The position numbers were made by a program, and so were the translations under genes. Positions 32,677-62,135 of a stretch of DNA of 64,000 nucleotides are shown here, piece by piece. Location: positions 2,790,001 through 2,854,000 of the forward strand of contig NC_047080.1 in NCBI RefSeq assembly GCF_902459465.1, given 5' to 3'. Below the pieces are notes generated by a model. That model ran no database searches. It was not told where the DNA came from and saw only the letters and a list, made by a program, of their open reading frames with translations. Position 1 is the first letter of the stretch; every line of letters starts with the position of its first letter. This stretch comes from Asterias rubens (taxonomy: Eukaryota).

Positions 32677-35600
32677 TCAGAGATTCGTTGAAGAAGACGT
32701 TTGACGGCTGATGTATTCCCGCAGAAAGCCCAAAGTTGCTTGCTTTCCACACTGATTTGAAATGAAAGCAAAAACACATAAAGGCCTATTAGTTTTGTTT
32801 AGTTTGTTTTTATATTACAAATAACTTCTCAGTCAATATGAATGCCCGAGAAACAAAATTTTATTATAAAGAATTCCCAAAAGTTCTGGAGTAGGGTCCA
32901 CGTCAATCTTGCAAAAGGCATTCTGCATTGGGAAGAGTTTTCATTTCGGTTTTACCCATAATAGTCAGAATGTGTGTTAGTACTGTATACTCAGTCAGTA
33001 TAGGGTTACTTTCCCGATTTCGGTGAAAAATGTACAGACACATTACGCAGGTGGGCCTCGAACCCACGACCTTTGCAATTCTAGAGCAGTGTCTTACCAA
33101 TATACAACTGAGATTGCCCGGTAGCTATAAGAGAGGCAGTTAGAATCATATAATTTAATTTACCTCTATTAGAAATGTCTTATCTTCCTGCTCCATGTCC
33201 CAATCGAAGGCCTCCAAGTACTGTGTGTTAATTCCGATGGTGCGCTGGAAATCAGAACTCTAGAAAAGTGAAGAAATTTTGTGAATCGGAGACACAAACC
33301 TGTTAGCAAAATATTATCACTTTTAATTTCTTGTATAAATTATACTTAACTTAAATTACTTTCTTGTAAACACAACAATACCAAATCAAGGCTATTGTAA
33401 AATACACAGCCGGTCTACACACTATGGTAAAAGAATACATTTTGTGTCCTTTATAGTTAAATTGGCCGATAATTATATCCTACTTTTAAAACATCTCTCT
33501 CATCATAATCGATTTCATAATAAACGGGTTCAACGTTTTTCATAGACCAACTCGACCAACGTGTTCCTTTAGTATTGTAATTGTTTGTTCGTTCGTTGAT
33601 ACTAAAAGAAAAAGAACAAGTCACATCACTTTTGCCGATGGAGCCTTCTCGGTATATGGACCCAAACTCTGGAATAAACTTCCGAATCACATCAAGGACA
33701 CAACATCATTCAACACATTCAAGGCACTTCTGAAAGCCCACTTGTTTCAAGAGGCCTACCATCAATGACTTTTTATTTCTCCTGTGCCTCTTGTAGCCTT
33801 TGAGAAAACTTTTGATTGAGGCGCTATACACATTACGTTTGATTGATTGATTGAAAAACAACAGCACCAAAACGAGTAAAGGTGCTTAATACAAAGTACG
33901 CAAACAATGACAGAATGCAAGTCAACTACATGTATACTCACCCTTGTTGTTACACGCTGAACATTGAGCAGCACAGTGTCGACCAGGGAACCAAGTAACT
34001 GAGTGATACCCTTGATCTCATGCCGTTCATACCCACATAGAGTCTGCAGTAAGTCCACATCTCGTTTGCCTGCCAGTTGGACAAGTTCTGAGTACTCAAT
34101 CTAGATCAAAATAGTGGGGTAAACTAAGAGAACTATTTAAAGGAATGATGCATTTTATAATGTCAGAGAATGCAAAGAGTAGGACCATCGCAGAATATTT
34201 CTTTTTAAGAACAAGCAACTTCAAAAATGTTCAAATGGCTGCCCGCTTGTTATTCTACCAATCTATTTTATCAAAAGAAAATATGCAATGGCCCTTTAGT
34301 CACGTGTCTTTCTAATAGAATGCTCGGACACTATGCCAAATTCCATGCTTTTATTATCAGCGGGCACAATCCCAATCTGCCGCTATAAACTCACATTGAC
34401 TTCATCTAACCTTATGTTTTTGTTTTCAGTTTAAATTTGCATAATAATTATTTGAAATGCTGAAAATGTGCCAAGGCTATTTTAAATTTATTGGGTATTA
34501 GATTAAAAAACCTGGTTGGAAAACTTCTTTGAAACTTAAAAAGTGCGTATAAAGTAATCTCTGGTTTAAAAATAAACATAGAAGTTTATGCTCAAAGATA
34601 CAAAATAATCTTCGCTTAGAACACAATAAATAAAAGTGAGTAAATTAAATTGTATTTTTTCTTTTTACCTCACCACTATTATCGGTGTCGATGATTTTAA
34701 AGATGTCGTCTGGATGTTTCACACCGTTAAAAAGTATGTCGATGTCATCATCCGAGAGCTAGAGGAATGACAAAGGATTAATATATCTAGCATCATTATA
34801 CTGTAAAGGAAGCTATCATGTTTCTTCTCTTCATTATGCCACGTATGCCGACGTTGTTATTAATATATATTTGGTTTGCGGTAACACCATGCGTGTATCT
34901 ACTTGCCAGGGGCCAATTTCATAGAGCTGCTTAAGCAAAAAAATTGCTTAAGCACGAAAAATAGCTCGCTTATTTTACACATGTTACTGGCCAAAATTTC
35001 ATGCCATATACATTGCTTGTAACTGGTATTTGGCTGTTGTTTACTTAGCATAACAATTGAGTGGAGTCTTGGCCGGTAATCTGATTTTACTAAGCAAGGA
35101 TTTTTTTGCTTAAGCAAAGTTTTGTGCTTAAGCAGCTCTATGAAATTGGGCCCAGGTAGAGTTTGTTCTTAGAGAACTGTCTTGCTTAATTCTACCGGTA
35201 TACCGCGGAGTAGATTGTTTGGGTGTTCGGGAGACTTCTCAGTTTTTGAAAAGAACTGTCCTGCTTATTAACTATTACCTGGGCGGGATAGTATAGAAAT
35301 AGGCTGGGACTACTATAACTTTAGCGTATAGAATCGTAATTAACTCGTAAGTTCTTGGAGTCTGTGTACATTGGCGAGACCGGTAGAGACCTCACTACCG
35401 AGACCTCACTACCAGGCTGAAAGAACATAAAGCGCACTGCCTCGAATGTATGGACAACAACTTTACAGTGACTAGTTCAGAAGTGTCTGTAAGACTGATT
35501 ATTTGAGTCTTAAGACTGACTAATAGACCAATTATTTTGCATGTAAGACTACATGTATTTAAATTTTCTTGCAAGGCGACTAAATAATTGTGCACCAATC

Positions 35601-38600
35601 TTTAGAAAAGTCAGTAAAATTAAACCATTTTGAAAGACGAATTAATATTAGTCATTAATTGAAAGTTTGCTTAAATAAAAAAAAAATAATAAAAATATTG
35701 AGTAAGTGATGTTTTCAGTAAAGGGTGTAAGGGGAAAAACAATTTGGCTTGTACTTGATGTCAGTTTGAAACTAAAGTTGTGCTTACCTCCTTAAAGGAT
35801 TGTCTGAACTCGTATTTAGAGACGGTACCACTTTTGTCAGCATCTGCATGGCCCAACATGTTAACCAGTCGCACTAGAGCATCTTTAATTTTCTCTTTTG
35901 ACGCTTGTTTTTCATCACAACTCTTCTCCTTTTTTCTTAATGAGAGGAATTAGGGACAATAGTAACACTCAATGAATGATTCAACAAAATAACTATAAGA
36001 TTCATCTGTCGACGAGTTTTTTGTGTTGTCATGGAGAGGGTATTGCCATGGTGATTTGTATTGAGGCATCACACTTCGCTTGTAAGATTTGTGCACAACT
36101 TAAGATTTATTTTATTGTATTGTAAGATCAATCTTGGCTATTCTGAAATCGATGTTGCGCTGCTAACCATAAGCACTCGAAAAGGCATGCTAAATTTTCG
36201 GTGCTTACTAAAAAAATAATGTAATGTAAATCCAATGTGAACACGCCATCTGGCGCCTAATTTTCTTGCCAACCTGTAAAACACGCCTACGCTTTTAGCA
36301 AACTATTGTTCGTTCAGTTAGCACGAAGAATTAAACACCGTGCGTTTAAACTGTTTACGCAAGATTGGCAAAAACGAGATAAGGGTAAGTCAGAATAAAA
36401 CGACAATTCTGTGCCAGCAGCCTCTTGGTGGCACTCGATATATGATTACACCGATTGGAGAAGAAAACTCACCGTTTAAGTTTTGTGTCTGGGGATGGGA
36501 CTTCCCTGGCATACTTGCGGACCCTGGCGTCGAGGTCTGTTTTCATTGTGTCCTGCTCACTCGCGGAAAACTGTAATTAAAAAAGCGAGTTATTTTGGCG
36601 CAATCAATTTGACTATAATTTCGATCCACTACTTAAATCGTATAGTAAACATATTACTTGAATGTCAACTTGAATTAAAGGATTACACAACTTACCAAAC
36701 ATACACCAGAGTTCTTTTTTAACACACTTCATGTTTGGAATTACATGTACGTCACGCAGGCCATGGCCTCTGTTGCCCCTGGTCTTGACCTTGGTGCCAC
36801 TCCAGAAGTTCCACATAGACTTAAAGGGAAGGTACACGTTTGGTAATAACTCAAAACAAATAAATTATTAACTTAAAAACTGACTTGGTAACGAGCATTT
36901 GAGTGCTGTTGGTAGTATAAAACATTGTGGGAAACAACTCCCTCTGAAGTAAAGTAAATTTTTAGAAAGAGGTAATTTCTCACTAAAATAATAAAAGACT
37001 TCTAGCTATAGAAGTCTTTTATTCTTATCTGAAAGCACACAAGTTCGTCCAACAAGGGTGTTTTTTCTTTCATCATTCATTTATGTTATGGTTATGATGG
37101 GATACACCAAGTGAGAAGACTGGTCTTTGACAACTACCAAACGTGTACCTTCCCTTTAAAGATTTCTCAATGAAAGTTTCCCTTTGCAAAATGTATTTAG
37201 CCTTGTCCTTTCAAGGATGAAACTCCGGGCCTGACACTTACCAGCAGAATTCCTAATGTCTTCTTGTTGACCGTCCCAAAGCGTCTTGACAAGTCCCACT
37301 GATCGCTAACATTCGGTTTACAAAGTCGCTCAAAGAAATTGTCTTCCCGGTCCATTGATAAATACCAGCCTAAATAAAACAATAAGAGGAGTTACAGCAA
37401 TAAGTTGGTCACTTTCTGCTCTCTCTGTGCACGCAGACCAAAGACTTTCGAAAAGAAGCATAGTGTGTGCCTATGGCAAACATTTTGGTCATTATGTGAA
37501 AAACCCGTATACAGTGAGATATGGTGGACACAATTCTAGGGCACTCTTTGGTTAGGGCACATTTTGTCTGTAGACACTCAAACCAAAGTAGTCTTTTGGT
37601 GTCCGCCATACTTGAAATGGGCTAATGGTTCGTGTTCTCTAGAGTTTTGTGGAAAGAGCCGGTTTTGGGTAGGAGATGCAATGACATGTCATGTACGAGC
37701 GGTCAAAGGCACGGACAAAAGCTTCGAGGTTCCGACTACCATGCTTCATTTGTAATGAATCTGTTCGGAAATGGCTGAACATGCAAGGGGCAAATTGTAT
37801 AGTTTTAGTAACATCCTCTTGATCGATAATAGCCCAACCGTATACCTACCATCAAAAGCGTGGACTGGGTAGTTACACAGAAGACCACCATCAACAAAGT
37901 AGTTCTGTCTGAACTTGACCGGTTTCAAAATAGCTGAAAGGGGGATACAACATTGCAACTTGAAACACAAATAAAGTATTTAAAATAGTATCAACATTTT
38001 TGTTCGTCAGAATTGTGTTTTGGTTGTTGATGGTTTAAAAAGAGATTCGATCTAACAAATCATTGTGTATTGCAAAGTTTTACACTTTAAAAGTGTGCCG
38101 GTCACTTTGGCTTAGAGGAGGGTTCGTGAGATGTAGACTCTTCGAGGTCAAAGGTGACTATGGACGAGGGCAACGGCAGATCGCTGACGTAATTCACGAG
38201 ACTCTAAGTGTGACGTATGATGTTCAATGTCTTTTCAGCCAAACGAAGCCTTTTCAAGACTATACATTAATACAATAGATAATGTAATTCGATTATCCTT
38301 CAACCTTGACCCCAGGTTTAGTGTATACCGTATCCTACCTGGAATAGAAGCAGAAGCCCTGGCAGCGAGGTAGATAGGCATTTTGGGCGTTGTCTTCGCA
38401 TGAAAATACACGGCGTCCATCATATTCAAATCAGCTCCCACAATGCATAGCTCCACGCCTTCACGTTCCTTGTATAACTACGTACACGACAGTTGGTTTA
38501 CAAGTTATTCATTTATTCATTTTCATTAATTCATTTTGATTAAAAACCATTTTGATAAAAATTGCACAGATTAAATGACATAAAATTGCACCACCGCAGT

Positions 38601-40628
38601 GGTAGGTTATAGTGCAAGTTATGAGCTTATAATATTGGTGAACAATAGGCATTCCGTTATTCGATAAGTTTGGACTTATCGTGTACGTACACGATAAGAA
38701 AGACTCAATATTACTCATGTTAGAGCAATACCGTAAATTACAGACTAACCTGCCTGAAAGTAAAATTCCTGTCTCCACCAGTCTTATTGCACACGTTGTC
38801 ACCTATCCACCTCTCCAGCTTCTTTCCTGGGTGAGCGCCAAGTTTACCGACGAGATTCACCAGTCGCCCAAAAATTCCCCACTTCCCGTCTAAATTCAAC
38901 AAAAATGGATTTGTGAATTGATAAAAAATACAGAATGAAAACCATCACAGGCTAAGCTACAAAACCAAAAAAATAAAAGCAGACACAACAAAAACAAAAG
39001 TACAGACAAAGACCAGATCTAAGATTAACATTTCCATACATCACTCTTACCATAAATTAACGGTGAGAAGTTTGGACCCAGCAGTTCCTGTATTTCGTAG
39101 GAGTCGTAACCCAAAGCTGAATAAGTAGCTACGATACTTCCAGCACTGCTACCTGCAAATCGCTTGATATTCTTCATTATCCCCAGCTCCTCAAGTACCT
39201 ATGATTAAAAAACAAAGGCCCAATTAAAGTCAAGCATCACCCCATGAGAACCGTATTTAGTTTGCACTTTGGTACAGCCCTTTACACTTTTTTGGGGGTC
39301 AGATAAAGGACCCATATTCGGTTCACGCGGTGCCTGACCCTTGTCTAGGTCAGTAGGGTCACGTGGTGTCTGACTCATGTTTGGGTCAGTGTGGTCACGT
39401 GGTGCCTGACCCTTTTCTGGGTCAGTAGAGTCACGTGGTGCCTGACTCATGTTTTGGTCAGTAGGGTCACGTGGAACTTGATGTCTGGGTCAGCCTGACC
39501 ATTGTCTTGGTCACTAGATTTACGTGGTGCCTGACTCATGTCTGGGTCAGCCTGACCAATGTCAGATTCATTAGAGTTACGTGGTGCCTGACTTATGTCG
39601 TGGTCAGCCTGACCAATATCTGGGTCATTAGAGTTACGTGGTGCCTGATCAATGTCTGGGTCAGTAGGGTCACTTTTGTCACTTGTATGACACAAAATGT
39701 GTGTAAAGAATGACACAGGAAACCGAAGCACAATTTATATCAAATTTCAAATGTTTAACCAGTCCGGGTCAGCCTGACCCAGATAAGGGTCAGGATCAGT
39801 AGGCCCCGTTATCCGGGTCAATTCTGACCTCGGAGTTTTTTACAGTATACATGTATAGGAAAAACTGTTGACTATGAGGAATGACCCCCAAAATACTAAC
39901 ATACATGTACGTCTTGAAGTTTCTCTAAAATGTCAATAGTGGGAACAATTTGTTGGTATCAACTTTGGATGTACAGATAGTTTGTTTGAAATTAGCCAAT
40001 TACAATTATTTTAAAGGCACTGGACACGTTTGATATTGTGAAAGACCAGTCTTCTCACATGTATCTCAACATTATGCATAAAATAACAAACCTCTGACAA
40101 TTTTGCTCAATATTGGTCATCGACAAAGAAATAATGAACACTCTTGATACATTACTTTGTGTGCTTTAACCAGATGCATAATGAAAGAGTTCAGTTGTAA
40201 ACCTTAATTATTTGAGTGAGAAACTGCCCCTTTCTCAAAATCTACGTTGGAGCCGTCTATCATATATGTTGGGTTCAACAGCTCAACAGTTCAAACACCT
40301 TCAGCTATTTTTTTAATTTTTTTATTATTTTTTTATTTTAATAACTACCAACCGTGTCCAGTGCCTTCAAAGGATATCTTGATACACTTACTCGGATGAC
40401 TCCAACATAAGACATACTCTTACTTCCGCCTCCCTCGAAAGCAAGATTTTCAAAAGGGAAGTCACATTCTGCAAACTCTCGCTTCTCGTTCTCAGTCAGA
40501 ATTGGTACACGTTCGTCTAACCTGTAACACGTTGTTGGTGCATAACGTTTTCCTTTGGATCCACGTTTCACTTGTTTCGTCTGATGAGATGGTGATTGAA
40601 GAAAACCACTGAATGAATCTTCAGCCAT
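32677..40628 (-). CDS. Patatin-like phospholipase with two EF-hands, copy A (complete, ~513 aa, 12 exons)
   Basis: Exons 40628-40392, 39198-39051, 38889-38750, 38477-38339, 37933-37850, 37369-37242, 36570-36473, 35935-35788, 34758-34669, 34100-33942, 33259-33164, 32751-32677. Motifs NLAFEGGGSKS, FAGSSAG, ASASIP, FVDGGLLCNYP; EF loops DADKSGTVSKYE and DTDNSGE|IEYSE; C-terminal RTIGINT..CGKQATLGFL. Confidence 0.9.
32940..33125 (-). mobile_element. tRNA-derived SINE, family 3
   Basis: Reverse strand reads ttggtaagacactgctctagaattgcaaaggtcgtgggttcga; copies ~44340-44510 and ~19690-19760. Confidence 0.7.
33625..33855 (+). mobile_element. 3' end of an L2-clade LINE
   Basis: FADGAFSVYGPKLWNKLPNHIKDTTSFNTFKALLKAHLFQEAYHQ* is the typical L2 ORF2 C-terminus, followed by a short UTR and (TTGA)n tail. 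Confidence 0.85.
39322..39848. repeat. 36/57-bp GGGTCA-rich minisatellite, possibly a CACTA/EnSpm-type subterminal array, in intron 1 of patatin copy A
   Basis: CACGTG at 39360, 39396, 39432, 39468 (36-bp period); TACGTG at 39521, 39578, 39635 (57-bp period); terminus ttttttacagta resembles a CACTGTAAAAA TIR. Confidence 0.85.
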
Positions 40629-40889
40629 GATTTTTCAGTGCCTGTGTCTCTAAGCAACCATGGAGGTAGAACTACCGCCCTCAACCGTATAACTGTGGAG
40701 AAATCTCGTCGTGAATGATAGTCCAAGTGTTATTAACATTACCACTCGGTTCATTCACTCTAAGTACATAGTACACATGCAATATGTCCATGAATTTGTG
40801 CACGTGCTATTCCTAGTTCCGGTTTCGCACAATGCTGTCTACACGCGAACATGGGCCTACTAAACATACCACTCAGCTTATTCACTCTG

Positions 40890-41040
40890 AAGGCCGAGTT
40901 ATAGTCGGTCGCGCGATGGTCGGGCGTCGGTAATCTTGACGCGCGATCATAAAAAGACATGGTTTTTAGGCCTCAGTCTTAGGATTGCGCGCAAGTCTTC
41001 CGTCGCGCGACCATCGCGCGACCGACTGTAAATCAGCCTT
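40890..41040. mobile_element. Hairpin MITE upstream of copy A start codon
   Basis: aaggccgagttatagtcggtcgcgcgatggtcg / cgaccatcgcgcgaccgactgtaaatcagcctt. Confidence 0.8.
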
Positions 41041-42643
41041 AAGTACATTGTGCAATGTTCATGAAATTGTGCACGTAGCTACATAATAATATTCATAGTT
41101 CCGGATTCGCACAGTGCTGCTACACACGAACATACAATGTACATGTACATTTCCACTTGCTCGTCACCAACAGGTTTTAAAGTAACAAAGTACGAGTAGT
41201 ACTTCTGTCAACCACTTCTTCATGTTCACTGAGGCATGCGATGACAAAACCCATTCATACATGCCCGGGGTCAATAGGTAAAGGGGCCAGATCAAAGGGG
41301 GTTTGTGTGATGAGTCATACGTATAGAGAAAACCATTACCGCATTTGCATAAATACACCTGTAGCATAATTGGCAAAAAAAAAATATAAAAAATCATCTA
41401 ACCTTTCTCCATAGTCTAACATCACAGATTTACATTCAACTTATGATGATGAAAGTAGGAAACATCCCTTTTAATATTTCTGTCTGAAATGTCATATTTG
41501 ATGAGAAATAAATACCAGTTAGTGTTTTATTCATGTTTAAAGGCAGTGGACACTATTGGTCATGACTCAAACTAATTATCAGCATAAAACCTCACTTGGT
41601 AACGAGTAATGGGGAGAGGTTGATGGTATAAAACATTGTGAAAAAAAAAAATATCGATGTCATGCAAAAATAATGTGTAATCGGTTTTCACTATTTTCTC
41701 GTGACCCATGATGGTCGATCGATCTCAGTAAAGGTGTGTCAGTTTTGTACAAATGTATACGGTGGACTACAGAAATTGCCTACACTGCCGGCAGCTGTAG
41801 CAAAAACAACTCTGTACTGTTCCTTTATTTTTTTACTATTTATTTTATTATTACACATGTATTCCTTTTTTTAATATATAGAAAAATACAATATTACGAG
41901 CAGATGTTTATTTATTTATTATACAATGGATATTCACATTAAAAGGTCCCGAATGGCAAGGCATTTATGAACTTCTCACAGAACAAACGTTTCAGACAAA
42001 CCATTCATAAACACTTTAAAGTTGATGTAAACATAAGATTAAGACAGACAAGAAAAACTTATCAAAACATAAGAAAAATATATCAATTTCAGTAGTATAC
42101 CAAAACAAAATTATATTAATTAAACCCTGATACACAAACTGTGTAGAAAAAACATTACAGGGTTCTGCATTTGATTTGATTTGATTTTAAAAGGTTTATT
42201 AAAAACAAAGACAATCGCAGCCAGAGGCTGAATTGCAGTCAAATTACAAAGATATAAGTAAATATATAAATTTCAAAGAGCTAAAAATACGAGAATAAAA
42301 TGAAATATAAAACACCGATAAAAAAAAAGATTTACAAAGATTATGGAAAAAAACCTGTTGGCCTCATGGTCCAAAGCAAGTCCAAAGCAAGAAATTTGAA
42401 ACCAAAACCGCCTCCAAATTTGGGCTACCAGAGTCTGCATGGTGTACACTGTTGTGTTTGTTGTTTGTGTTTCTTGCATTTTATGTTGTTATAAGTGCAT
42501 GTATGTACGTAGGATTTGACTGCGTAGCTCCACTTGAAATTAAGGTCAAAAGGTGCATTTAGAAGTGGATTGTCATAGTCTTAATGTAGCTTTCTTGCGT
42601 AATTCACGAGCTTCGGAGTGTGACGTCATAATGTACAGATTAC

Positions 42644-45600
42644 TCATTTTGTCATTTTTTCAAATATTGCTTCGATACCAGTTTCACGAGTCTCAACGGT
42701 GATAAGTTTCTCACGTTCCTTGGGTTGTTTGCTGGTAGACATGTGCTCTCGTAGGTAGCTCAAAGTTGCTTGCTTTCCACACTGTTTTTGGGGACCAACA
42801 AAAACTATAACATGAGGCACGGATCTATGAAGTGATGACAAAATGACGTTGCGCACGATATTCCTTACACAAAATTAAACAGTATTTTTTTTAAGTGTAC
42901 CCGCATCCCTTTTTTTAAAGGCAGTGGACACTATTGGTAATTTCTCAAAACAATTATTAGCATAAAACCTTACTTGGGGACGAGTAATGGGGAGAGGTTG
43001 GTGGTATAAAACATTGTGAGAAACGGCTCCCTCTGAAGTGACACAGCTTTCGAGAAAGAACTAATTTTCCCTGAATTTGATTTCGAGACCTTAGATTTAG
43101 AACTTCAGGTCTCAAAATCAACCATCTAAACGCACACAACTTCGTGTGACAAGGGTATTTTTTCTTTCATTATTATCTCGCAAGTTCGATGACCGATTGA
43201 GCTCAAATTTTCACAGGCTTGTTATTTTAGGCATATGTTGAGATACACCAACTGTGTAGGCTAGTCTTTGACAACTGCCAATAGCGTCCACTGCCTTTAA
43301 ACAGTGTGCTTTTTTTACCATAAGTGTGCTACCCGCATCTCTTTTTTTAAGGCCTCTTGTCACAGTCGGCTTTTCAATTATTCTTTAATTATTCAACCCA
43401 AATTCAAGCTTAATTTACCTCTATGAGAAAGTTCTTATCTGCTCTCTCCATGTCCCAATCGAAAGCATCCAAATACTTGGTGTTGATACCAATGGTGCGG
43501 GAGAAATCCGAACTCTGAACAATTCAATAAAAAAGAAAATGAAAAGATGTGAATAGAGCCAAGCAAACAATCGGGTCTTTAAGCTTACGAACAAAATGGG
43601 AGTTATTTCCTCTGAATGCGACTTGTTTACTCTTCTCTGTGATATTTCATTGAGCTATATGTTTACAGTTGTACATCTTTAAGCCAGAGTAAAGTTGGTT
43701 TGAAGGAACACAAATTTCCCCCCCCCCCCAAAAAAGAGAGAGTTTGTCTCGCATTGTTGGAAACTTATGGAGTCGATTCAAAAGAGGGCGCTATCAGAAG
43801 AAGTTTGTACACTAATCTCATGCTGCCCCACCTGTCTGTTTGGTAAGACTCTACGTTTCGTCTTTTGTCACATGTTTTTGTTGACTAGCTTGCTCAAAGT
43901 CATAGTTCTTAGACCGATCCAGTAGGCTCTGCCCACGACGCACGTGTGAGCAAGAACACGGGGTTCTCCAATGCCTTCTGCACAACTCTGCTGCGCGCGC
44001 CAAGATACGCGCACGATGTCTGACTTTATTTGTCGGACCTTCTTTGAGTTGTGATTGGTCAATACGCAATGGGGCGGAGCCAAGTGGATCGGCGCTACTC
44101 ACTCTTGTCGTTACACGTTGCACATTGAGAAGCAAAGTATCGACTAGTGACCCGAGTAACTCGGTGATACTGCTGATCTCACGCCGTTCATATCCACTTA
44201 GAGTCTGCAGTAAGTCCACTCCTCGTCTGGCTCCTAGTTGGACAAGCTCTGTGTATCTTTGTTTGATTACAAAAAAGTTAGTACAAATATTTTCAAGCTT
44301 GAAAATTAGCTTTTTTAAATGTTAAATTTGCATCGAGGGTAAAGAATAGTAATTTCGGTTTTACCCATTACACCGATGTGTGTTAGTTAACACTGTATAC
44401 TTAGTACTTTCCCGTGTGCTGTGAACACAAAACCACAGACATATTATTACTCGGGTGTGACTCGAACCCACGACCTTTGCAGTTCTAAAGATGTGCCATA
44501 CCAGCTATACAAATTGTTTACTTCAAACTGCTGCTCACAATATACACTTGTCTTTTGAAATTAAAGCTGTAGGTTAATTACTCGTTCTTACCTCACCACT
44601 TCCATCGCTGTCGATGATATCAAAAATAGCATCTGGGTTGTCCTCACACTCAAAGAGTAACCGAATGTCATTAGCAGTTAATTTTCCTCTGTTCTAAAAG
44701 TGAAAAAAAAAGCATGTTGTTTTATGCATATTTTGAGAAACACCAAGTGAGAAGACCGGTCTTTGACAATCCCAATAGTGTCCACTGTCTTTAAGCCTAC
44801 TTCAATCATGTCCATAATCACCTTTCACCTACATTCATTACACATTGAAAACGCAGTCAAATCATATGTACATGTGTACATTACACATTGTCTATAATAA
44901 GACAAATGCAAGCTGAGACGACCGGAAGTGCAGCTGCCAAACTTCGGACCAATCAAAACAAATCAATGAAATCAATGTATCCAATGAAATCACTGGTTCT
45001 GTAAAACCAATACCTGTCTTTATCCTTGCGGAAAAATGCAAGGGGCCAGTCTACAAGCTATGATGGTTGTGTTACCTGTTGGAAAGATGTCCTGAACTCC
45101 TCTTTAGAAATAGAACCACTCTTATCGGCATCAGCGCCGTTCAACATTGTCATCAGTCGGCTGACTGCTTCTTTAATATCATCCGTTGAGTTCTGTACTT
45201 TTTCATTTTTCTTTGCCATTTTCCTTCAATCGGTAGGAAAAATAGAGCAGAAGTTTGAGAAAAGAAAGACAGTTTTAATAGACAGTAAGTTGACTGATAA
45301 GTGGAAAGCTTACCTGCTAAGTTTTGTGCTTGGGGTTGGGACTGGTTTCCCACCATACTTTGCGATCCTATCGTCAAGGACCGTTTTCATCGTGTCCTGC
45401 TCGCTGGTTGAGAACTAACAACAGTAACAATAACAAATAAAAAAAAAGGAATTAAAAATTTACGAAATATTAGCACTTTCGTAAGTAGAAATTGTCAACC
45501 GTTTTTGTTTTACTGAGTAAAAATACACACATTCCTTGTGTGCACCCCTTTGGATATTCCTTTTGTTCTTTCAATTGCCCAAGTTCTTAAGATTTTCCAG

Positions 45601-48600
45601 ATACTTTGTACACAAAATTCCTCGTGGAGCAACCAAGTCTTTAGAATTTCCCTATGGAGTTCTTAGAATTCCTTGTTTCCTTTTTTTCCCCTTGGTCTCC
45701 AGAGGGTAGGCGTACGGAATATTAAAGCACTATATATATAGGTGCAAAGAGCGAGAAGGATGTTTGAAGGTGGTTAGGGCATTATCCTGTTTAAATTTTG
45801 AGGTATTCAAAACTGTTTTTTAATAGAGTGCGACTAGAGTGTTGTTTCTTTCAATATTTTCTTGGAACTTCACTGACCAATTGAGCCCAAATGTTCACTG
45901 TTTTTTTTATGCATATATTGGGATACACAAAGTGTATGTCTTTGACAACTCCTAAAAGTAGACATTGTCTTCAAGTGATTTATGGGACAATACGTATTGC
46001 CAAAAAAAATTAGACCATTATACACTTTCGGTACAGAAAAATAAAGGTTAACAGATTTACAAATATTTTACAGGGTTTACAGAAGGTAATGGTGAAAGAC
46101 TTCTCTTGAAATATCATTCCATGAAATGCTTTACTTTTTGAGAAAACAGTAAAACAACATCAATTCTTGATAGCGAGAATTACGGATTTATTTTAAACAC
46201 ATGTCATGACACGGCGAAACGCGCGGATACAAGGGTGGGTTTTCCCGTTATTTTCTCCCGACTCCGCTGACCGATTGAGCTTAAATTTTCACATGTTTGT
46301 TATTTTATATATAAGTTGTGATACACGAAGTGTGGAACTTGGACAATACATGTACTGTTTACCGAAAGTGTATAATGGCTTTAACTTACAACCTACCAGA
46401 AGTATTCCAAGTGTCTTGTCATTTAACTCTCCGAAGCGTTCTGACTTGTCCCATTTCTTACTCGCATTGGTAAGATCGCCAAATCGAGCAAAGTAACTAT
46501 CCTTGGGGTCCATAGATAAATACCAGCCTAAGTAGAAGCAGAGAGATCTTACAAGTTAAAGGCTCTGGGTGGATTTAACAAAGAACCAAAAAAGTCTTAT
46601 CTCGAGTTAGGACCAGTTACTCGTCCTAACTTAGGACTATCCATGCAATTTGTAAATATCTCCTAGGACTAGTCCTAAGTTAGGACTAGTCCGAACTCTT
46701 TGTGAAATCGACCCCTGCGGACACGTTTGGTAAAAAAAATACAAGTTTGTAAAATGATATTATTAGCATAAATCTTACTTGGTAACGAGCAACGGAAAGC
46801 CATTAAACCGTCATTCAAAAATACCTCAGGCTGTTTCGCTATTTCTATTTGTGGAGAGCGAGTCACGTGGGGGTGTTTAAACGGTCGATAATAACCAGGT
46901 GGAGCTGTTTATAGTCGGTTGTTTTCGGATACGGATTTCGGATACGCGACCAAATGCATATCTGAAAACTGTCTCAGTCTTAAAACAAAAAACACTTACA
47001 GAGCTCCAGGACGTCGAAAAACGGATCAGTTTTACAAAGTTGTATACTTTTATCATGCCGTTTAACCAAAGAGGCATTCATGAATGGGAATAAAAGAGTA
47101 GTGACTCGTTCTTAAACTGCCGTTTAAAACCTTACAGGGCCGGGCCGTGGCACGGCGATAAAGGCCCACGCCTTCGGCTCGGGACTTTATCACACGGCCA
47201 CGACCCTGCCGGTTTGAAACGGTAGTTTAAAAAGAATTCTCGCTACCATTTTAATCACTTATTACATCACCCTTCGGAGGTCGCGTAGGTCTATACGTAA
47301 CTCTTAATGTTTCAATTTAATACCTACCATCAAAAGCGTGGACCGGATAATTACAAAGAAGACCGCCATCCACGAAGAAACTCTGTCGAAACTTAACGGG
47401 TCTTAAAACAGCTGCAATGAGAATTGAATTCAATATTAAGAGCTCACAAATGCTTTTTTGGAAACTGCTTAAACAATCCCCGCAAAACAGTAATTTTTTC
47501 ACATTACTTTTTCATTTAGACTTCACTTAAAAATTGCATAGAAAGATGTTTTAAAAAGGAGAATATAATGATCAACACAAGTATCACCCAAAATTGCACG
47601 GTTTTCATTTTACGTCGCGAACTAACACGGTCGGCCATTGGGAGTCAAAAATGTGACTCCCATGGCCGACGAGGTAAAAGGAAAACCGTGCAATTTCGAG
47701 GCATGTTTGTGTGGACCATTGTATTTTACTTTTACAACATCTTTCTAACCATTATGCATTTCACAACAAACGGTTTCAACTGCTTTTTAAAGACCAACTC
47801 GGCCGATCCAAGGCAACGTGTTCCTTTAAAGGTGCAGTGAATCGAGTAAATTGTCACAAAACTGTACCTGGGATCGAGGCAGAAGCCCTGGCAGCGAGGT
47901 AGATAGGCATATCCGGTGTGGTCTTAACATGGAAGTAAACGGCGTCCATCTTATTCAAATCAGCTCCCACAATGCACAGCTCCACACCGCTCTCTTTATA
48001 CAGCTGAAATGGATCGACGTATATACGGAACTTGGTTACAAAACTGTGATGGGTCCAGCTCGTATTTGTTGCTCTATGTGGCGTGTAATGAGGTGCATGC
48101 TGGTCTAGCTGGCGATCAAATAAGACCAGCATGAACCCAATTCAACCGTTAGCGCTTGCGTATTGGGTACTTGCCAAAAGGTTAGGATCTCATAATCGAG
48201 GTCAAAGGGTCTATGACAATGACATCTCTGTGACGTCAGTCTTCCAGGCTTAGATTTGACTTACCTGCCGGAAGGTATAGTTTTTGTTGCCGGTCTTGAT
48301 GAGCACCGTGCTAGCTATCCAGTGCTTAAGCTTGTTTCCCGGATGTGCGCCCAGTTTACGGACTAGATTTACCAGTTGCCCTAGCCATCCCCAACTACCA
48401 TCTTGACATATTTCGGGAAAAACATGCAAATTTGTTAGAATTTGATTTAACTCGGTTATTTGATTTCTTGAAATGTGTTTACTTTTAGTTGATCAGATTC
48501 AAACACGCCTTAAAACAACAAGATTGAATAAATACAAATAAATAAACGCTTTGTCTAATCGATTAAACTTATTTTGGTTGAACGAAGACATGGAATGGGA

Positions 48601-49907: not shown

Positions 49908-52557
49908 TATAGAAGTCGCAATGACAACACTGCTGAGACCAGGCTTTATTTTGCATGAGAATAGTTGTTGCTCGCGGACAATTGGAGTTCAGCTTAAAGC
50001 TTAGTCGAGTTGATTGCGTAACTGTTGTAGAAAGTGCACATAGTAGAGAGCAAAGGCATTATTGCAAAGAGCATGGTCTATTCACCCAGATTGGACGATA
50101 GTAGGGAGGGGGGGGGTCTTTGCACACTACATTGGTTTCGCACACAACTTTCGCAAGAGATCACCTGCCATTCTTTTGTTGTTGGGCAACTACGTGTATA
50201 CCTTACATATTCTATCACACAGGTACATTCTTTCTATCACACAGGTACATTCCACAGGTAAACTAGAGATGATCCACCATGCAAAGTTTCAAATCCTATT
50301 TAGAGATGATCTTGCTTGTCGGTGAGCACAGCCATCTCATTTGATCTCCTTCCTACGTCATGTGATCTCCTTCGCTACGTTAATGGTGGCATGGTTTTGT
50401 GTGTAAAAGCGCTCACCTCTCACCAAGGTGACCCCGGTTCAATTCCCTGCCAGGGCCATCTGTGAGTTGAGTTGTGCGTTGGTTCTCTGCTGTGCCACGA
50501 GGGTTTTCCAGTTTTTCCGGTTTTCCTCCCTCGGGAACAATCAAACACTTTCGATCGTGGATGTGCTCCGTGGTCATAATGGGTTGATGAGGCTGGCAGC
50601 CAAAGGCGCCCTTGCATGCCTGCTTCTCGAACACGTTGTAGCCGCGTCCTTCACAATTCAGCTCTTAGCTGCGAGCATAGAGCAAGGAACGCGAGTAAGG
50701 ATGATTAGCCCCCAAATTATTTAAAAAAAAAATTATTATAATATAACACTTGACTCAAGTCCCAATCCCGTGCCAACGCCAGAAAACTATATTTTGACGG
50801 TGATGCGGTTGTTTGCTAGTTGGCGTGATAAGCTTTAATAGGGACCTCCCAAACGAGAACGGGATCAAATCTACGTCATAATGGATTCATAGAATCCCAA
50901 CAAACTTCGTTATTTGACTGCCGTTTAAAGGGAAGGTACAAGTTTGGTAAAAATATTAACTTATAAACTGACTTGGTTAACGAGCATGGATAGTATCAAT
51001 CATTGTGAGAAACAGCTCCCTCCGATCGTAGCATAGCTTTTGAGAAAGAAGTAATTTCTCACTAAAATAATATAAGACTTCTAGCTAGAAGTAATTTATT
51101 CCTATCTGAAAGCACACAAATTCCCATCAAGGGTTTTTTCTTTCATCTTTTTCTCGCAACTTCGATGACCAATTGAGCCCAAATTTTCACAGGCTTGTTA
51201 TTTTATGGTTGAAATGGGATACACCAAGTGAGAGCACTGGTCTTCGACAATTACAAAACGTGTACCTTCCCTGTAATTTAGTATTTTTGTCACCGAACTC
51301 AGGAACGTTCTGATACAGTGCTTATACACACTTTTAAAAGGATCAATTCAAGTAAACCCAAATCAATGTATTTTCCTCCACATGTTAAAATCAAGGCAAA
51401 TTTTCAGAAATTAAACAAAAAGGTTTTGGATCAAGTGCATTTTCAAATTTTTATTGCCGAATAAAGGCATAAACCCAATTTACTTTGCACAAGTGAAAAT
51501 AAATATTATTTTTTTTGACAGAGACAGAGAACCACTACGTTTAACACACACACAAGGTGTTAGCGTAAACATGTATTACGCGTAACAGACGAAAGATTAG
51601 AGTAGTAAAACCACAATAATAAAATTGAACTCAATATTATCCGAGGAAGTTAAATAAATTAATTTTGTAAACAAACTATATGAAGCAGTATTTATTCCCT
51701 GAATGGAAACTGCTTCGGGCGCCAGCTTACTCTACCGAAAGAAACTACGTCACATGTTTGCTACAAAATACAACTTGAAACACAAAAAGGGCTCTCAGTA
51801 AATTGTGCATCTTGTCGTTGCTTTTACGTCAATTCACATTTCAAATTGCCACGAGCAATTGCCGTAGGATTTTCTGTCGCTACAAGGGGGACAGATTGAA
51901 CTATTACAACTAAATAGTTTTAAAACAATATTTTAAAGGAACATGTTTCCCCAGCCGATACTAGTAAATAATATTAACGCATCTTGTTAAAATTTATGAA
52001 TAAACTATTATAATATTATTTTTCTTCTTAAGAGACTTGTAATCCGTTTTCGATGCTTAAAACACACTTTATATAATATCTCTTCGATCTCTTGACGATG
52101 ACAAGAGCAAGCTAGTCGAACAAACGTCACAGGAGACCAATTTAAGAACTCATTCCGTAAAATATAACGACCCTATAAGCTAAAATTGTAGACCCAGCCA
52201 ACTTTCTATTTCTTATCCGTCCGGAGTAGTTTATAAAACGCAGGACAGTTCTGTTTAGAACTGAGAAGTCTCCCGAACAATCCGATATCCGCGATGGTAG
52301 AATGAAGAAAGACAGTTCTTTAGAAAATAAAACTCTACCTAGCAAGTAGATACAAACATGGTATTACCGCAAACCAGATATTACACATAATATACATAAT
52401 TTTTTTCGACATAATTCCATTTTAAATATGGCAAGCCAAAAGTTATTAAACGCGTATAACCACGCACCCTTCGTAACTGAAAACAATAATATTGCTTCTC
52501 ATTTTGAAGAGAATACAAATAATTTCATTAAAATGATTTCATTGGATAAAAGTACAA

Positions 52558-52820
52558 TGACGTAAGCTTACCATTACTGTAATTTGATTGGTTAATAGAA
52601 ATGAATGTATGACGTAAGCTTCCCATTACTGTGATTTGATTGGTCCGAAGTGATGTTTGTAGGACGTAAGCTTACCATTAATGTAATTTGATCGGTTAGT
52701 AGAAATGAATGTATGACGTAAGCTTTGCATAACTGTTATTTGATTGGTCCAAACAAATATTTTTTTGACGTAAGCTTCCCCTTGTTCTGTGATTTGATTG
52801 GTCCCAACTGATGTTTGTCA
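52558..52820. repeat. 52-bp tandem array (5 units), each with TGACGTAAGCTT and TTTGATTGG
   Basis: Unit starts 52558, 52610, 52662, 52714, 52766. Confidence 0.95.
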
Positions 52821-56100: not shown

Positions 56101-59100
56101 GGGAAGCTTTCTACTATCATTATCTTCGAACTGTGTAAGTTTAGTGTAAATCTGTGGACATTGTGTTTTTTGTCCTACAAAAGTTCTATAGACCCTTTAA
56201 GCAGCTCTATGAAATGGGGCCCAGCTCTCACAAGAGGGATTCACGACCATCCTCTTTAACAAAAAATTTTTAATCAACTACTCACTCTTGTCGTTACACG
56301 TTGCACATTGAGAAGCAAAGTATCGACTAGTGACCCGAGTAACTCGGTGATACCCTTGATCTCACGCCGTTCATATCCACTTAGATTCTGCAGTAAGTCC
56401 ACTCCTCGTCTGGCTCCTAGTTGGACAAGCTCTGTGTACTCAATCTGTTCTCATAAAACATAATTATGGTTATCAATATGTTATTGTTTGCAGATCAACA
56501 TTTTAATGGGACTTTTGTTATCGAACTGCTGCTGTTCACAATGATTATTTGTACTTTTCGAAATTAAGTTAAAGGCAGTGGACACTATTGGTAGTTGTCA
56601 AAGACTAGCCTTCATAGTTGGTGTATCTCAACATATACATAAAACAACAAACCTGTGAAATTTTGAGCTCAATCGGTCATCGAACTTGCGAGATATGGAT
56701 GAAAGAAAAAAACACTCTTGTCACACGAAGGTGTGTGCTTTTAGTCAAGTTCTAAATCTGAGGTTTCGAAATCAAATTCGTGGAAAATTACTTCTTTTTC
56801 GGAAACTATGGCACTTCAGAGGGTGCCGTTTCTCACAATGTTTTATACCATCAACCTCTCCCTATTACTGTCTTGTCACCAAGAAAGGTTTTATGCTAAT
56901 AATTATTTTGAGTAATTACCAATAGTGTCCACTGCCTTTAAGGAGAATGGACGAGAAGGTGTAGAAGGGCTTAAACACCCAGCAGGGTGGACACGTGAGC
57001 ATTACAAGACTTATTATTACTACTATTATTAATTATTTTTATTATTATTTTTTAGATTTGTGGATACAATGAACGACCCGAAAGCGAGTACATTGTATCT
57101 ACACTTTAGAATCTATTTTCTGTCAAACGACGTTTGGTAACGTTTCTGTTTTGCAAAGATTTTAAGCAGTTTTATAGTGCTTGCAACATTATCAAGTACC
57201 ATGTTTTGATCAGTTTTCAATCTTAAGGTTTTACTTAAAGTAAATTAATTAGCTGGGAAATGTTTTAAGAAACTGAAATAATAACTTGTCAGCTGTGTTT
57301 GCACATCATGATATCCTTCAATTTGGAAAGACTGTCATGTATTTCAAGTTGAGCTATCACTTTAGTTTGTAGATTCTACAGTTAAGAGTCGTTACATGTT
57401 TATAGTTTAGTGTAGATTCGTATACAGTTAAGTGTAGATTCATACAAGTAATCTTCAGTTTACTGTCAAAGGAATAGTTTAAAGCTGGGATATATATCTA
57501 GTTTCTTACCTCACCACTTCCATCGCTGTCGATCATGTCAAAAATAGCATCTGGGTTGTCCTTACACTCGAAGAGTAACAGTATGTCATCAGCAGTTAAT
57601 TTCCCTCTGTTCTGAAAATGAAAACAAACAAAGTTCAAATCTGCGAATGTCAAATGTTTTTTCAATGACATGCTCTATGCGCCAAGTTCCTTGGTTGTGA
57701 TCATTACAGTCACAAATATTCCCCAGATATGTCTCCATCTGCCCAATAGCAACAAGGAACACAGACTGAACAGTTTCAAACTTTGAGGCTCGTGAATTAC
57801 ACCAGTGATATTGCTTGAGCCTATACGTCAATTATACATTCATTTCACATAGAGAAAGGCTGTCAAATCCTATACGCGTAAACACTGGGTGCGTTCGTTT
57901 AGCTTTCCTGGGTCAACCCCGGTGTGTGGCGGTTTTTTCTTCCAGGACGAACGTGGGTAATTATCTGTACACGTTCGTCCTGGGAGAAAAACCGTCACAC
58001 ACCGGGGTCGACCCAGGGAAGCTAATTGAACGCACCCATTATGTAACACAAATGCACGTTGCTTGTGTAGACGACCGAAAGGGCAAGCTGACAAACTTTT
58101 TACCCCAGACCAATCAAAAACACAGATACCAAAAGCTATGTCACGTTTATCCAATGAAATCACTGGTTCTGTAAAACCAATACCTGTCTTTATCCTTGCG
58201 GAAAAATGCAAGGGGCCAGTCTACAAGCTATGATGGTTGTGTTACCTGTTGGAAGGATGTCCTGAACTCCTCTTTAGAAATAGAACCACTCTTATCGGCA
58301 TCAGCGCCGTTCAACATTGTCATCAGTCGGCTGACTGCTTCTTTAATATCACCCGTTGAGTTCTGTACTTTTTCATTTTTCTTTGCCATTTTCCTTCAAT
58401 CGGTAGGAAAAATAGAGCAGAAGTTTGAGAAAAGAAAGACAGTTTTAATAGACAGTAAGTTGAATGATAAGTGGAAAGCTTACCTGCTAAGTTTTGTGCT
58501 TGGGGTTGGGACTGGTTTCCCACCATACTTGGCGACCCTATTGTCAAGGACCGTTTTCATCGTGTCCTGCTCGCTGGTTGAGAACTAACAGATAGTAAAA
58601 CAGGAGTAAAATTAGTAAAATCAGACTCAACAAGAGAGAAAACCGATTTCAGACAGACGGGAGCACTGTCATTAGAAGCGCAAAGCCGAGGCAAGGTGGG
58701 AGAGGAAAAGAAAGAGCGGTATAAACACTTTTGACTTTTCAACTTGTACTTTATTGAATCACCAAAATTAACCCAGGTTACCAACTAAAAAGTAGTGCCA
58801 CACTTAGTTTTTCCTCAAGACATAACGTTGGAGGTCCATATTATATCAGCTCTAAAGGTCATGGCCGAGTGGTTAAGAGCATCGAAGTAAGAGCATCGAA
58901 TTCAAGTCCTGGTGCAGTCACCGGAGTGTGGGTTCGAATCCCGGTCGTGACACTTGTGTCGTTGAGCAAGATACTCTACTATAACTGCTTCTCTTCACCC
59001 AGGGGTATAAATGGGTACCTGCGAGGGTAGAGGTTGATATTGTGAATGAAAAAGCCTTTGGAGCGATACAAACTGTTGCCAAGGTTGTATAATCCCAAGG

Positions 59101-62100
59101 GAGCTGAGAAACATTAAAAGGGATGTTATTGTGAAATGCGCTATATAAGATTTTTTTTTTTTTTCCTGTTTTCCCTTTTTTCAGGCATGATGCACTGACC
59201 TACCTTTTCAGGGATATGGGGATAATGTGGTCTCGGAATATGCTAAAATTGTACAAAAAAGACCACTATATAAGTATTCAGTTTAAACCAGCACATTGTT
59301 GAGGCATGATGGGCTATACTCCAAAATAACTTTTCTTTCTAAAAGTCAACAATAAATGGCAATGGAAATACAAAGGAAGAAAGAAAGAAACGTAAACTAA
59401 TAACCTTACCACAAGAACTCCCAGTGTCTTGTCGTTCACTTCTCCGAAGCGTTCTGACTTGTCCCATTTCTTACTCGCATTGGTAAGATCGCCAAATCGA
59501 GCAAAGTAATTATCCTTCGGGTCCATGGATAAATACCAGCCTAGGAACAAGCAGAGACAGCTTACAAGTTAGTCTTGTTATGTATATTATGTAAATGACT
59601 CATATTTTTTTTTAAAGGGCGGCACAATATCAATTCTCAATATCGAGAATTACGGATTTATTTTAAACACATGTCATGACACGGCGAAAGGTGCGGAAAC
59701 AAAGGTGGGTTTTCCCGTTATTTTCTCCCGACTCCGATGACCGATTGAGCCTAAATTTTTAACAGGTTTGTTATTTCATATAGAAGTTGGGATACACAAA
59801 GTGTGGGCCTTGGACAATATTGTTTACCGAAAGTGTCCAATGGCTTTAAACTATAACTGATTTTGGTACAAGTTTTTAGTTATTACTATTAGTTATCGAC
59901 ATTTATTTATTTACTTCGGTTTGACTATTTTATCAAGTGCTACATAAATCGGTCTCATATATTGGTATACTTCAAAATCCTGTCTTTAGTACTTTGTATT
60001 AATTTCGGCCAATAATCAGACTCAAATAATTCTTAAAATCGTGATACCCACCATCAAAAACGTGGACCGGATAATTACACAAAAGACCGCCATCAACAAT
60101 GAAGCTATCCAGATACTTGACCGGACTCAAAATAACTGCAAGAAAGACAATTGAAATCAATGTGGAGGGCAAGACATTTATTTAATACTTATATTTTCAG
60201 TTCTATCTTTCAAAGATCAATCATTTCTGTCGAAACCTCTGACGGAATCGCTGTGCAAGTGGATTGGGGTTTTCCCTACATAGTCAACAGACCAGGGCCC
60301 AATTTCATAGAGCTGCTAAGCACAAAAATTTGCTTAGCATGAAATTTCTTCATTGGAAAAAACAGGACTACCAACCAATTCCACGTGATTTTAAGGATAA
60401 GTAAACAACAGCCGAAAACAAGCACCAAGCAATATGCAACAAATGGAAATTAGGTTGGTAATCCTTTTTTTTATCAGGGAAGCAATTTCATGCTAAGCAA
60501 TTTTTTGTGATTAGCAGCTTAGCGTCAAATTTTGTTTTAACTGTGCGATTTCCATTTCATAGCACTGATTACCGTACAGGCTTAAAGTCACCTGGAAGTG
60601 GTATTTTTTCAAAATAAAGCTTTTGTCACTAATATATTATGTGTCTTGATGAGTGGAATGTGAATAAACAGTTAACTAAGGTTTTAAAAATCAGTTCTTA
60701 TGTTATTTACAAATTAAGAGTAGACCCCGACCCGAGGGGGCGCTGTTCGTGACGTCAATCGAGGCAGACTTTGCCTGTAATGCGTAGAGTAAACACAATT
60801 GCAAAGTACATGTACGGACCAAGTCGTGAGTTTGTACGTTTAAAAAAAACAAAAAAAATGTTTTTTTCCGGCAATGCCGACCAGGTGTATTGCTGCTGAA
60901 TGCAGAAAAACACTTATTGAAATGTACCAACTCACGACTTGGACATACATGTACTTTGCACGTGTGTTTACTATACGCATTGCAGGCAAAGTCTGCCTAG
61001 ATTGACGTCACAAAAGGGGTAGGCGGAGTCAGCCCCCCAAACAACTTTATATATTTTTTAAACATATAAATCGTGAAAAACAATTACAAAAAAATTGTTT
61101 TATTGTTCGTAAGCATACACTCTTATGTTTGAAAGAAAAAAATTCTATTTCCAGGTGACTTTAAGCACGCGAAAAGGCGTGCTCGTCTTCCGAAAATAAA
61201 TGACGTCACAATGCAAATCCATGGCAAGCGCGCAACATGGCCGCCTAGTTTTTCTGTTAACCTGTGAAATACGCTTGCACCTTAGCAAATTTTCTGCTAC
61301 AGTAAGCACGAAAATTTGCTTACCGTTAAGCGCGCTATGAAATCAACCACATACGAAGGGCAGATTTCACAAATAATAGTTAAGACTGATCTTAACTTTG
61401 TGTGTCAATCTTAATTGCTTATCAAAGTGTGATGTCACAAAAATAGATCACTATGGTGATAGTGACAATACATCTTAAGACGAATCCAATATTATGCTTT
61501 GTGCAATCGTGCTTTATGCAAGTGTCGTGGCCGAGCGGTTAAGAGCACCGAATTCAAACTCTGGCGTTTCTGATTAGCAGAGTGTGGGTTCGAGTCCCAA
61601 GCCGTGACACTTGTGTCCTTAAGCAAGACACTTAACCATTGCTTCGTCCTCCTTCGAATGGGACGTAAAGCCGTTGGCCCATGTGTTGTGTAACGCATGT
61701 AAAGAACCCAGTCCACGTTATCAAAAAGAGAAGGGGTTCACCGCGGTGTTCCTGGCTGTTGCTGCTTTGCGCCGTAGCACCATGTAAACCCTAATAAGTT
61801 GCATCTTAATTGGGTCTCAGAATTCATCACTTCAATAACCTATCTTGAGTACCTTGTTGGTAGATACGTGAGCTATATAAGACTTCGATATTTATTGTTT
61901 ATATACCTTTATTTATATATAATTATTATTAAAACTGATAAGAGTTCCAGCAAATTAGTTTGAGAGTTAGTGAATCGAGAAAACCGTCACAAACTTTACC
62001 CGGGATCGAGCAAGAAGCCCTGGTAGCAAGGTAGATAGGCATATCTGGTGTTGTCTTAACATGGAAGTAAACGGTGTCCATCCTATTCAAATTGGCTGCT

Positions 62101-62135
62101 ACAACGCACAGCTCCAAACCGGTGTCTCTATAAAG
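53192..62135 (-). CDS. Patatin-like phospholipase with two EF-hands, copy C (exons 4-12; exons 1-3 not found in the window, presumed beyond 64000)
   Basis: Exons 62135-62000, 60135-60052, 59540-59410, 58584-58484, 58393-58246, 57611-57510, 56444-56286, 54498-54403, 53263-53192; same intron positions and phases as A and B. IVDGGLLCNYP; DADKSGSISKEE; DSDGSGE|IEYTE; CGKQATLSFLREYMATSKQPKEG*. Confidence 0.88.
55843..56196. mobile_element. TTAA-flanked MITE, third Kolobok-like family
   Basis: ttaa|aggatttgggtacc ... gaccct|ttaa; partial relative at ~4858-5090. Confidence 0.75.
57887..58037. mobile_element. Near-perfect 150-bp foldback MITE (GGGTGCGTTCG termini, Harbinger-like) in copy C intron 8
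   Basis: Two arms of about 68 bp around a 14-nt loop (ggtaattatctgta). Confidence 0.85.
61525..61900 (+). mobile_element. tRNA-derived SINE with family-1-like head and different tail
   Basis: gtggccgagcggttaagagc...gtgggttcgagtccc...gacacttgtgtccttaagcaagacacttaacc; tail ending gctatataagacttcg. Confidence 0.75.

Follow-up and report, generated by a model that had tools for sequence, protein, structure and literature searches.

Partners as different as Rab5, ubiquitin, ABHD5, calmodulin, and cyclic dinucleotides control lipases of the patatin fold, acting through a variable regulatory segment. This segment, which runs from strand 5 to the C-terminal patatin helix, comprises 48-83 residues in Pat17, VipD, ExoU, PNPLA9, and PNPLA2; it is opened by Rab5 in VipD, dimerises and binds the membrane in iPLA2beta, and is touched by ABHD5 in ATGL (PNPLA2) (PMC12871566). 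Within VipD, residues M371-N375 form strand 6, T376-P386 the Rab5-controlled regulatory loop or lid, and T387-S408 the C-terminal patatin helix (PMC12871566). In CapV, binding of cyclic GMP-AMP (cGAMP) makes the helices that follow strand 5 open the lipid pocket (PMC12480259). Here we analyse a 64,000-nt stretch of the genome of the starfish Asterias rubens (positions 2,790,001 to 2,854,000 of contig NC_047080.1, assembly GCF_902459465.1; hereafter the window), which at 32677-62135 on the minus strand carries three intron-bearing paralogues arranged head-to-tail (copies A, B, and C) of a patatin family with an EF-hand pair embedded in this same segment.

The starfish proteins differ from each of the described systems. 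VipD and VpdC (Legionella Dot/Icm effectors) and ExoU (a Pseudomonas type III secretion system effector) are secreted, and the co-activator domains of VipD and ExoU lie C-terminally, whereas the starfish proteins are products of intron-bearing animal genes, hold the EF pair inside the regulatory segment, and lack Rab5-binding, bridging, membrane-localisation, and chaperone-binding domains. They end around residue 510, one helix past the patatin fold, without effector-type C-terminal domains, and the combination of C-terminal co-activator or localisation domains with secretion signals that marks an injected effector was not found. The minimal patatins of the PlpD (P. aeruginosa) and B. subtilis YqhO type have a short regulatory segment and no EF-hands, and the CBASS lipases CapV and CapE, likewise without EF-hands, bind a cyclic dinucleotide at a distal site and form filaments. 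In iPLA2beta (PNPLA9), which carries ankyrin repeats, the Ca2+ sensor is calmodulin acting in trans, and in the distantly related cPLA2alpha (GIVA), which has a different cap, it is an N-terminal C2 domain driving membrane translocation.

Full-text literature searches turned up no account of a patatin/EF-hand fusion, nor of cd07207 members from animals, in agreement with an earlier note on this DNA, made from its letters, which knew of no functional description. Precomputed Pfam annotation and ESM Atlas clusters both catalogue the architecture, but it is unstudied, and the database names of family members are all 'uncharacterized'.

Fold assignment and position of the EF-hand pair

In sequence searches of solved structures, the best matches to a single sequence were VipD (5.6e-12) and ExoU (3e-10); the family profile likewise retrieved VipD (1.4e-28) and ExoU (8e-24), followed by PlpD and the CBASS lipase CapE, while no iPLA2, cPLA2, PNPLA, or plant patatin chain appeared at E <= 0.001 in either the sequence or the profile search. 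Structure comparison placed PlpD, VipD, and the CBASS lipases nearest, with iPLA2beta and cPLA2 at lower Z, and the best match among reviewed UniProt models was B. subtilis YqhO, so that the non-effectors PlpD, CapV/CapE, and YqhO are at least as close in fold as ExoU. With the solved-structure matches as a proxy for the cd07207 model, the designation as ExoU/VipD-type in the earlier note thus appears right for the catalytic-domain subfamily, and its separation of these proteins from human-type PNPLA and cPLA2 enzymes holds; by sequence membership (marked by a C2 domain in cPLA2 and ankyrin repeats in PNPLA9), they do not belong to an animal PNPLA1-9 or cPLA2 orthogroup. All NCBIfam matches stayed below threshold (VpdC with 84 bits against a cut-off of 1000, CBASS_lipase with 38.7 against 200, and also RssA and XopAW), PADLOC matches were weak, and none gave a family assignment; the equivalog-level score plus adjacent CD-NTase of a CBASS effector was not found. 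The three-layer alpha/beta/alpha patatin fold with strands 5 and 6 and the C-terminal patatin helix is present, and the motifs GGGx[KR]G, GxSxG, and DG[GA] all occur in copies A and B, with DGG in copy C. Together, sequence comparison supports the assignment of these proteins as putative patatin-fold Ser-Asp lipid hydrolases.

The EF pair was placed using an AlphaFold2 model, built with a 64-sequence alignment, of P0151, the intact orthologue of copy B in Asterias amurensis. The model (predicted local distance difference test 91.9, predicted template modelling score 0.87) is equally confident in the EF region and in the core; therefore, the pair is modelled as packed against the enzyme and not as a tethered appendage. 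Strand 258-264 (KTLGILLF) is followed by helices 273-283 and 294-327, EF1 (328-339), EF2 (374-385), helices 397-402, 412-431, and 434-439, strand 440-444 (RTIGINT), and helix 457-481. The model check proposed in the earlier note thus places the pair in the part of the patatin fold that links strands 5 and 6, the regulatory segment. From the KTLGILLF strand to the RTIGINT strand the segment measures ~175-190 amino acids vs. 48-83 in solved patatin enzymes, which makes the earlier figure of about 130 extra residues about right, and the EF pair accounts for the bulk of the excess. A 296-residue bacterial patatin aligns to positions 43-230 and 414-488 of the family profile, with ~21 residues in between where the profile has ~183 positions. 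Downstream of the pair, the family block 'D.eRT.gINTgY...G....FL' is colinear with VipD 369-415, which spans strand 6, the lid, and the C-terminal patatin helix; RTIGINT is accordingly followed by a lid-equivalent loop (residues 445-456) and then by this helix. This topology, together with the alignment to VipD, is the strongest argument for regulation in cis: because the EF pair lies in the segment that controls VipD, iPLA2beta, and ATGL, a cis-acting Ca2+ switch would be topologically sensible, and by analogy with these enzymes a role of the pair as a cis-regulatory Ca2+ device is plausible.

Gene structures and integrity of the three copies

The exons were first recognised as short open reading frame (ORF) pieces with partial Patatin and EF-hand Pfam matches. 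Exon 4 of the middle copy, used as a phmmer query against 1.8 billion representative proteins, retrieved full-length relatives of ~500 amino acids, all with Patatin and an EF-hand pair by Pfam, and the closest of these, P0004, guided the gene models, which were built with tblastn and a splice-site search. This homology-guided splicing resolved each gene into 12 coding exons with canonical GT-AG borders and intron phases 0,1,0,1,1,0,2,0,0,0,0 common to all copies, confirming the three paralogues with matching intron positions and phases read from the letters. The outer coordinates proposed there are exact, as the stop of copy A lies at 32677 and exon 4 of copy C starts at 62135. GC content is ~39% throughout the window, which contains zero assembly gaps.

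40628-32677, minus strand: copy A, 12 exons, 513 amino acids, open throughout (spliced alignment to P0004)
40628-40392, 39198-39051, 38889-38750, 38477-38339, 37933-37850, 37369-37242, minus strand: copy A exons 1-6
36570-36473, 35935-35788, 34758-34669, 34100-33942, 33259-33164, 32751-32677, minus strand: copy A exons 7-12, including the stop
49832-42644, minus strand: copy B, 12 exons, start of exon 10 damaged
49832-49680, 48874-48727, 48401-48265, 48003-47868, 47411-47328, 46527-46397, minus strand: copy B exons 1-6
45414-45314, 45223-45076, 44693-44592, 44255-44103 (in-frame part of exon 10), 43514-43419, 42781-42644, minus strand: copy B exons 7-12
62135-53192, minus strand: copy C, exons 4-12 only
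62135-62000, 60135-60052, 59540-59410, 58584-58484, 58393-58246, minus strand: copy C exons 4-8
57611-57510, 56444-56286, 54498-54403, 53263-53192, minus strand: copy C exons 9-12
40433-40419 (copy A) and 49721-49707 (copy B), minus strand: oxyanion loop GGGSK
39153-39139 (copy A) and 48829-48815 (copy B), minus strand: nucleophile elbow GSSAG
37895-37884 (copy A), 47373-47362 (copy B), and 60097-60086 (copy C), minus strand: catalytic Asp motif VDGG
35844-35809, minus strand: EF loop 1 of copy A, DADKSGTVSKYE
45132-45097 (copy B) and 58302-58267 (copy C), minus strand: EF loop 1, DADKSGSISKEE in both
34689-34086, minus strand: EF loop 2 of copy A, DTDNSGEIEYSE (DTDNSGE/IEYSE), split by intron 9
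57530-56430, minus strand: EF loop 2 of copy C, DSDGSGEIEYTE (DSDGSGE/IEYTE), split by an intron
44612-44592, minus strand: EF loop 2 of copy B, which stops at DSDGSGE
33244-33224 (copy A), 43499-43479 (copy B), and 54483-54463 (copy C), minus strand: strand 6 motif RTIGINT

The EF-hand pair predicted from the letters is borne out by both motifs and Pfam. It corresponds to the paired EF-hand of Pfam PF13499: two helix-flanked 12-residue loops in which positions 1, 3, and 5 hold D, N, or S, position 6 G, position 8 a hydrophobic residue, and position 12 E. Both loops are canonical in copy C. The annotated copy B product, P0153, matches Patatin (PF01734) with 98.7 bits (cut-off 27.7) and EF-hand_5 with 28.1 bits (cut-off 25.9), scores that are far beyond chance, and the orthologues of copies A and B reach 99.7-101.6 bits for Patatin, with EF-hand models above cut-off. 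No signal peptide is visible, as had been said before. The suggestion that the complete copies carry the catalytic motifs applies to copies A and B, which have all three; copy C lacks exons 1-3, which encode the oxyanion loop and the nucleophile, in the window, and a search of 62136-64000 with the N-terminus of its orthologue did not find them, although these 5' exons may lie beyond the window edge. Three intact copies were not recovered: copy A alone is demonstrably complete and intact within the window, and it is the functional candidate there.

The state of copies B and C makes it a serious possibility, somewhat short of an even chance, that the array is mostly decaying, with both being pseudogenes or non-catalytic derivatives and only copy A mattering. 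A three-copy DNA alignment shows a lesion in copy B at 44230-44300 (minus strand), at the border of intron 9 and exon 10, where the I and E codons of IEYTE, the end of EF loop 2, are missing. Use of the homologous acceptor (exon start 44256) yields a 154-nt exon with a frameshift and a stop after 22 codons, and the in-frame acceptors further in or out would each alter or delete the end of EF2. Copy B was analysed as two pieces joined by X. The NCBI annotators kept the frame only by dropping exon 10, as P0153 (A. rubens LOC117302869) is 100% identical to copy B with this exon skipped. The last part of EF2 and the long helix 412-431 are both encoded by exon 10, and because even minimal bacterial patatins retain this helix, normal folding of the exon-skipped product is improbable. 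P0155, the copy C orthologue in A. amurensis, starts with an unrelated first exon (MWTLVKIHGRS...) that joins at exon 2, lacks the GGGxKG oxyanion loop, and has Lys at position 12 of EF1, so the C lineage may be losing catalytic competence.

Against such decay stands that copy B is otherwise open and 98% identical to its intact A. amurensis orthologue, and that its lesion could reflect a variant haplotype or an error of assembly. In public runs, transcript contigs match the copy B exon borders 48265, 48003/47868, 46526/46397, 45414/45313, 45222/45076, 44693/44592, and 44103. Two long spliced contigs, ~2% and ~6% divergent from copy B, cross the exon 9/10 joint, and both have 6 extra bases between exon 9 and 44255, equivalent to an intact exon 10 start; they may stem from a sister species, another allele, or copy C. 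Among the public RNA contigs aligned to copy B, whose signal at the joint was swamped by intronic repeats, none identical to this copy crossed the joint.

The copies have closely related counterparts in A. amurensis, with identities of 95% for copy A (P0152), 98% for copy B (P0151), and 92% for copy C (P0155), and the three orthologues lie on one 18-Mb contig. In a maximum-likelihood tree, the copies group as (A,(B,C)), each with its own A. amurensis orthologue, and sequences from Patiria and a fourth Asterias paralogue fall outside; the triplication is therefore confined to this starfish lineage and arose before the two Asterias species separated. Over 556 nt that take in exons 7-8 and the intervening intron (44898-45427 vs. 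58044-58598), copies B and C share 91.5% identity, and in exon 10 (44095-44255 vs. 56278-56438) 97.5%, compared to 73-89% elsewhere and 79-89% in the other exons, which is consistent with gene conversion of the EF-hand module.

Repeats occur within and between the genes. Intron 1 of copy A contains minisatellites with 36/72-nt and 57-nt units (39323-39664), which give rise to long spurious Pro/Asp/Gln-rich ORFs on both strands (e.g. 39205-39731), and a 52-nt unit is repeated in tandem between copies B and C (52557-52803, ~4.7 copies, 75-86% match). Stretches of the copy B introns (42797-43387, 45949-46342, 46540-46736, and 47525-47918) reach RNA-contig word depths of 1e5-1e6 in four runs; these are highly repeated, transcribed elements with related copies elsewhere in the window (blastn).

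A candidate Ca2+ switch in the regulatory segment

With modest confidence, we lean towards reading the locus as encoding a tandem-triplicated cytosolic patatin-fold acyl hydrolase whose EF-enlarged regulatory segment would act as a Ca2+ switch. The enzyme would combine a Ser-Asp dyad and a GGGxKG oxyanion loop with a regulatory segment enlarged by an embedded calmodulin-like EF-hand pair, and it is most likely a phospholipase A (PLA). Upon binding of Ca2+ to both EF loops, the long helices entering and leaving the pair would re-pack, and the strand-6/lid region and the pocket-lining helix would then move, so that lipid access changes or membrane docking is promoted. Some points weigh against this proposal. 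The AlphaFold2 model represents a single state, two of the three local copies are not demonstrably functional, and Ca2+ could inhibit the enzyme, as Ca2+/calmodulin does iPLA2beta. In addition, EF1 is degenerate in many family members: under a strict canonical test it passes in only 20 of the 64 representatives, while EF2 passes in 40.

The corresponding failures (EF1 in 44/64, EF2 in 24/64) are what one would find if the EF pair were a structural or interaction module for dimerisation or docking, permanently Ca2+-loaded or non-binding, with activity controlled otherwise, an explanation that we regard as rather unlikely. The best structural matches of the pair include the EF domains of RASEF and CRACR2A, which are interaction scaffolds, and in iPLA2beta the regulatory segment has a long helix that serves dimerisation and membrane binding (PMC12871566). 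However, the Glu at position 12 is invariant in both loops of the bacterial members of the family (26/26 examined, all of which also keep GGGxKG, GxSxG, and DGG), and most animal members have at least one canonical loop. Such retention of EF ligand residues is expected under selection for metal binding and argues against a structural module. At least 60 of the 64 representatives retain the catalytic motifs.

A switch of the opposite sign, in which the EF pair would be a built-in equivalent of the Ca2+/calmodulin brake and the lipase would fire when Ca2+ falls, seems improbable to us. Nothing specific to this family speaks against it, but most EF-hand-regulated enzymes, as well as cPLA2, are activated by Ca2+. 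The insertion point itself does not reveal the sign of the Ca2+ effect, and there is a precedent for inhibition, as Ca2+/calmodulin inhibits PNPLA9/iPLA2beta (PMC12871566).

If the Ca2+ switch outlined above is correct, a family with its own Ca2+ sensor would offer a compact natural model for the gating of the lipid pocket by the regulatory segment. It would also provide a candidate Ca2+-dependent PLA in phyla in which such activities are known biochemically; to our knowledge, these activities have never been assigned there to a gene of the patatin/EF-hand type.

Taxonomic range and origin

Eukaryotic members of the family occur in starfish, a brittle star, and a sea urchin, in bivalves, gastropods, and a chiton, in an octocoral, Trichoplax, a nemertean, and a brachiopod, and in a diatom. 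A scan of one genome per bacterial species added 33 loci with uninterrupted ORFs of 450-500 amino acids, 31-39% identity to residues ~29-478, Patatin and EF-hand Pfam matches, and a GC content of 51-72%. The complete chromosome of Cystobacter fuscus Cbf 10 carries one of them, and many are on contigs of up to 1.1 Mb from Myxococcota and Actinomycetota metagenome-assembled genomes (MAGs). The earlier note had pictured an animal family, expanded in its lineage, whose EF pair takes over from the trans-activator. This picture has to be revised, since the same architecture in bacteria and in a diatom means that it is neither animal-specific nor a re-engineered effector. Furthermore, the pair does not take the place of the Rab5- or ubiquitin-binding domains, which sit C-terminal to the patatin fold and are absent here. 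The bacterial members thus correct the idea that animals re-engineered a bacterial toxin, and those that are intact provide an easy experimental entry point.

In an LG+G4 tree with a weak backbone, skewed composition, and an outgroup that is not clean, the bacterial proteins form one clade (Shimodaira-Hasegawa-like approximate likelihood-ratio test 95) nested among the eukaryotic sequences, which suggests a single inter-domain transfer in either direction. We would put forward only tentatively, and as more doubtful than not, the broader view that the family represents a third independent form of Ca2+ control of a Ser-Asp phospholipase, beside the C2 domain of cPLA2 and the calmodulin of iPLA2beta, with an EF pair acting in cis directly on the lid. 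On this view, one inter-domain transfer would lie behind a design shared by myxobacteria, actinobacteria, diatoms, and marine invertebrates, and in animals the enzyme would link Ca2+ transients at fertilisation, wounding, or immune activation directly to the release of fatty acids or lysolipids. Close full-length bacterial homologues might also suggest that the assembly contains contaminating bacterial DNA or a bacterial insertion of very recent date, but the chance of this is negligible, as it is ruled out by eleven GT-AG introns per gene with conserved phases and contradicted by a GC content like that of the rest of the window and unlike that of the bacterial loci, by syntenic orthologues on one A. 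amurensis contig, and by paralogues in other echinoderms.

The surroundings of the homologue in Cystobacter fuscus, whose genome was the only complete bacterial one examined in this respect, gave no operon clue and contained no CBASS neighbours; the adjacent genes encode a methyl-accepting chemotaxis protein, a spermidine-synthase-like protein, and a methyltransferase. Among the remaining bacterial sequences, the homologue in a Micropruina MAG has 4 in-frame stops (L033), and the one in an Enterobacterales-labelled MAG (L014) clusters with mollusc sequences on a very long branch (4.19), perhaps because it is a eukaryotic fragment that was mis-binned. Finally, P0199, a member of the bacterial cluster P0180, is labelled 'arachidonate 5-lipoxygenase' by JGI/IMG, which looks like an automatic mis-annotation.

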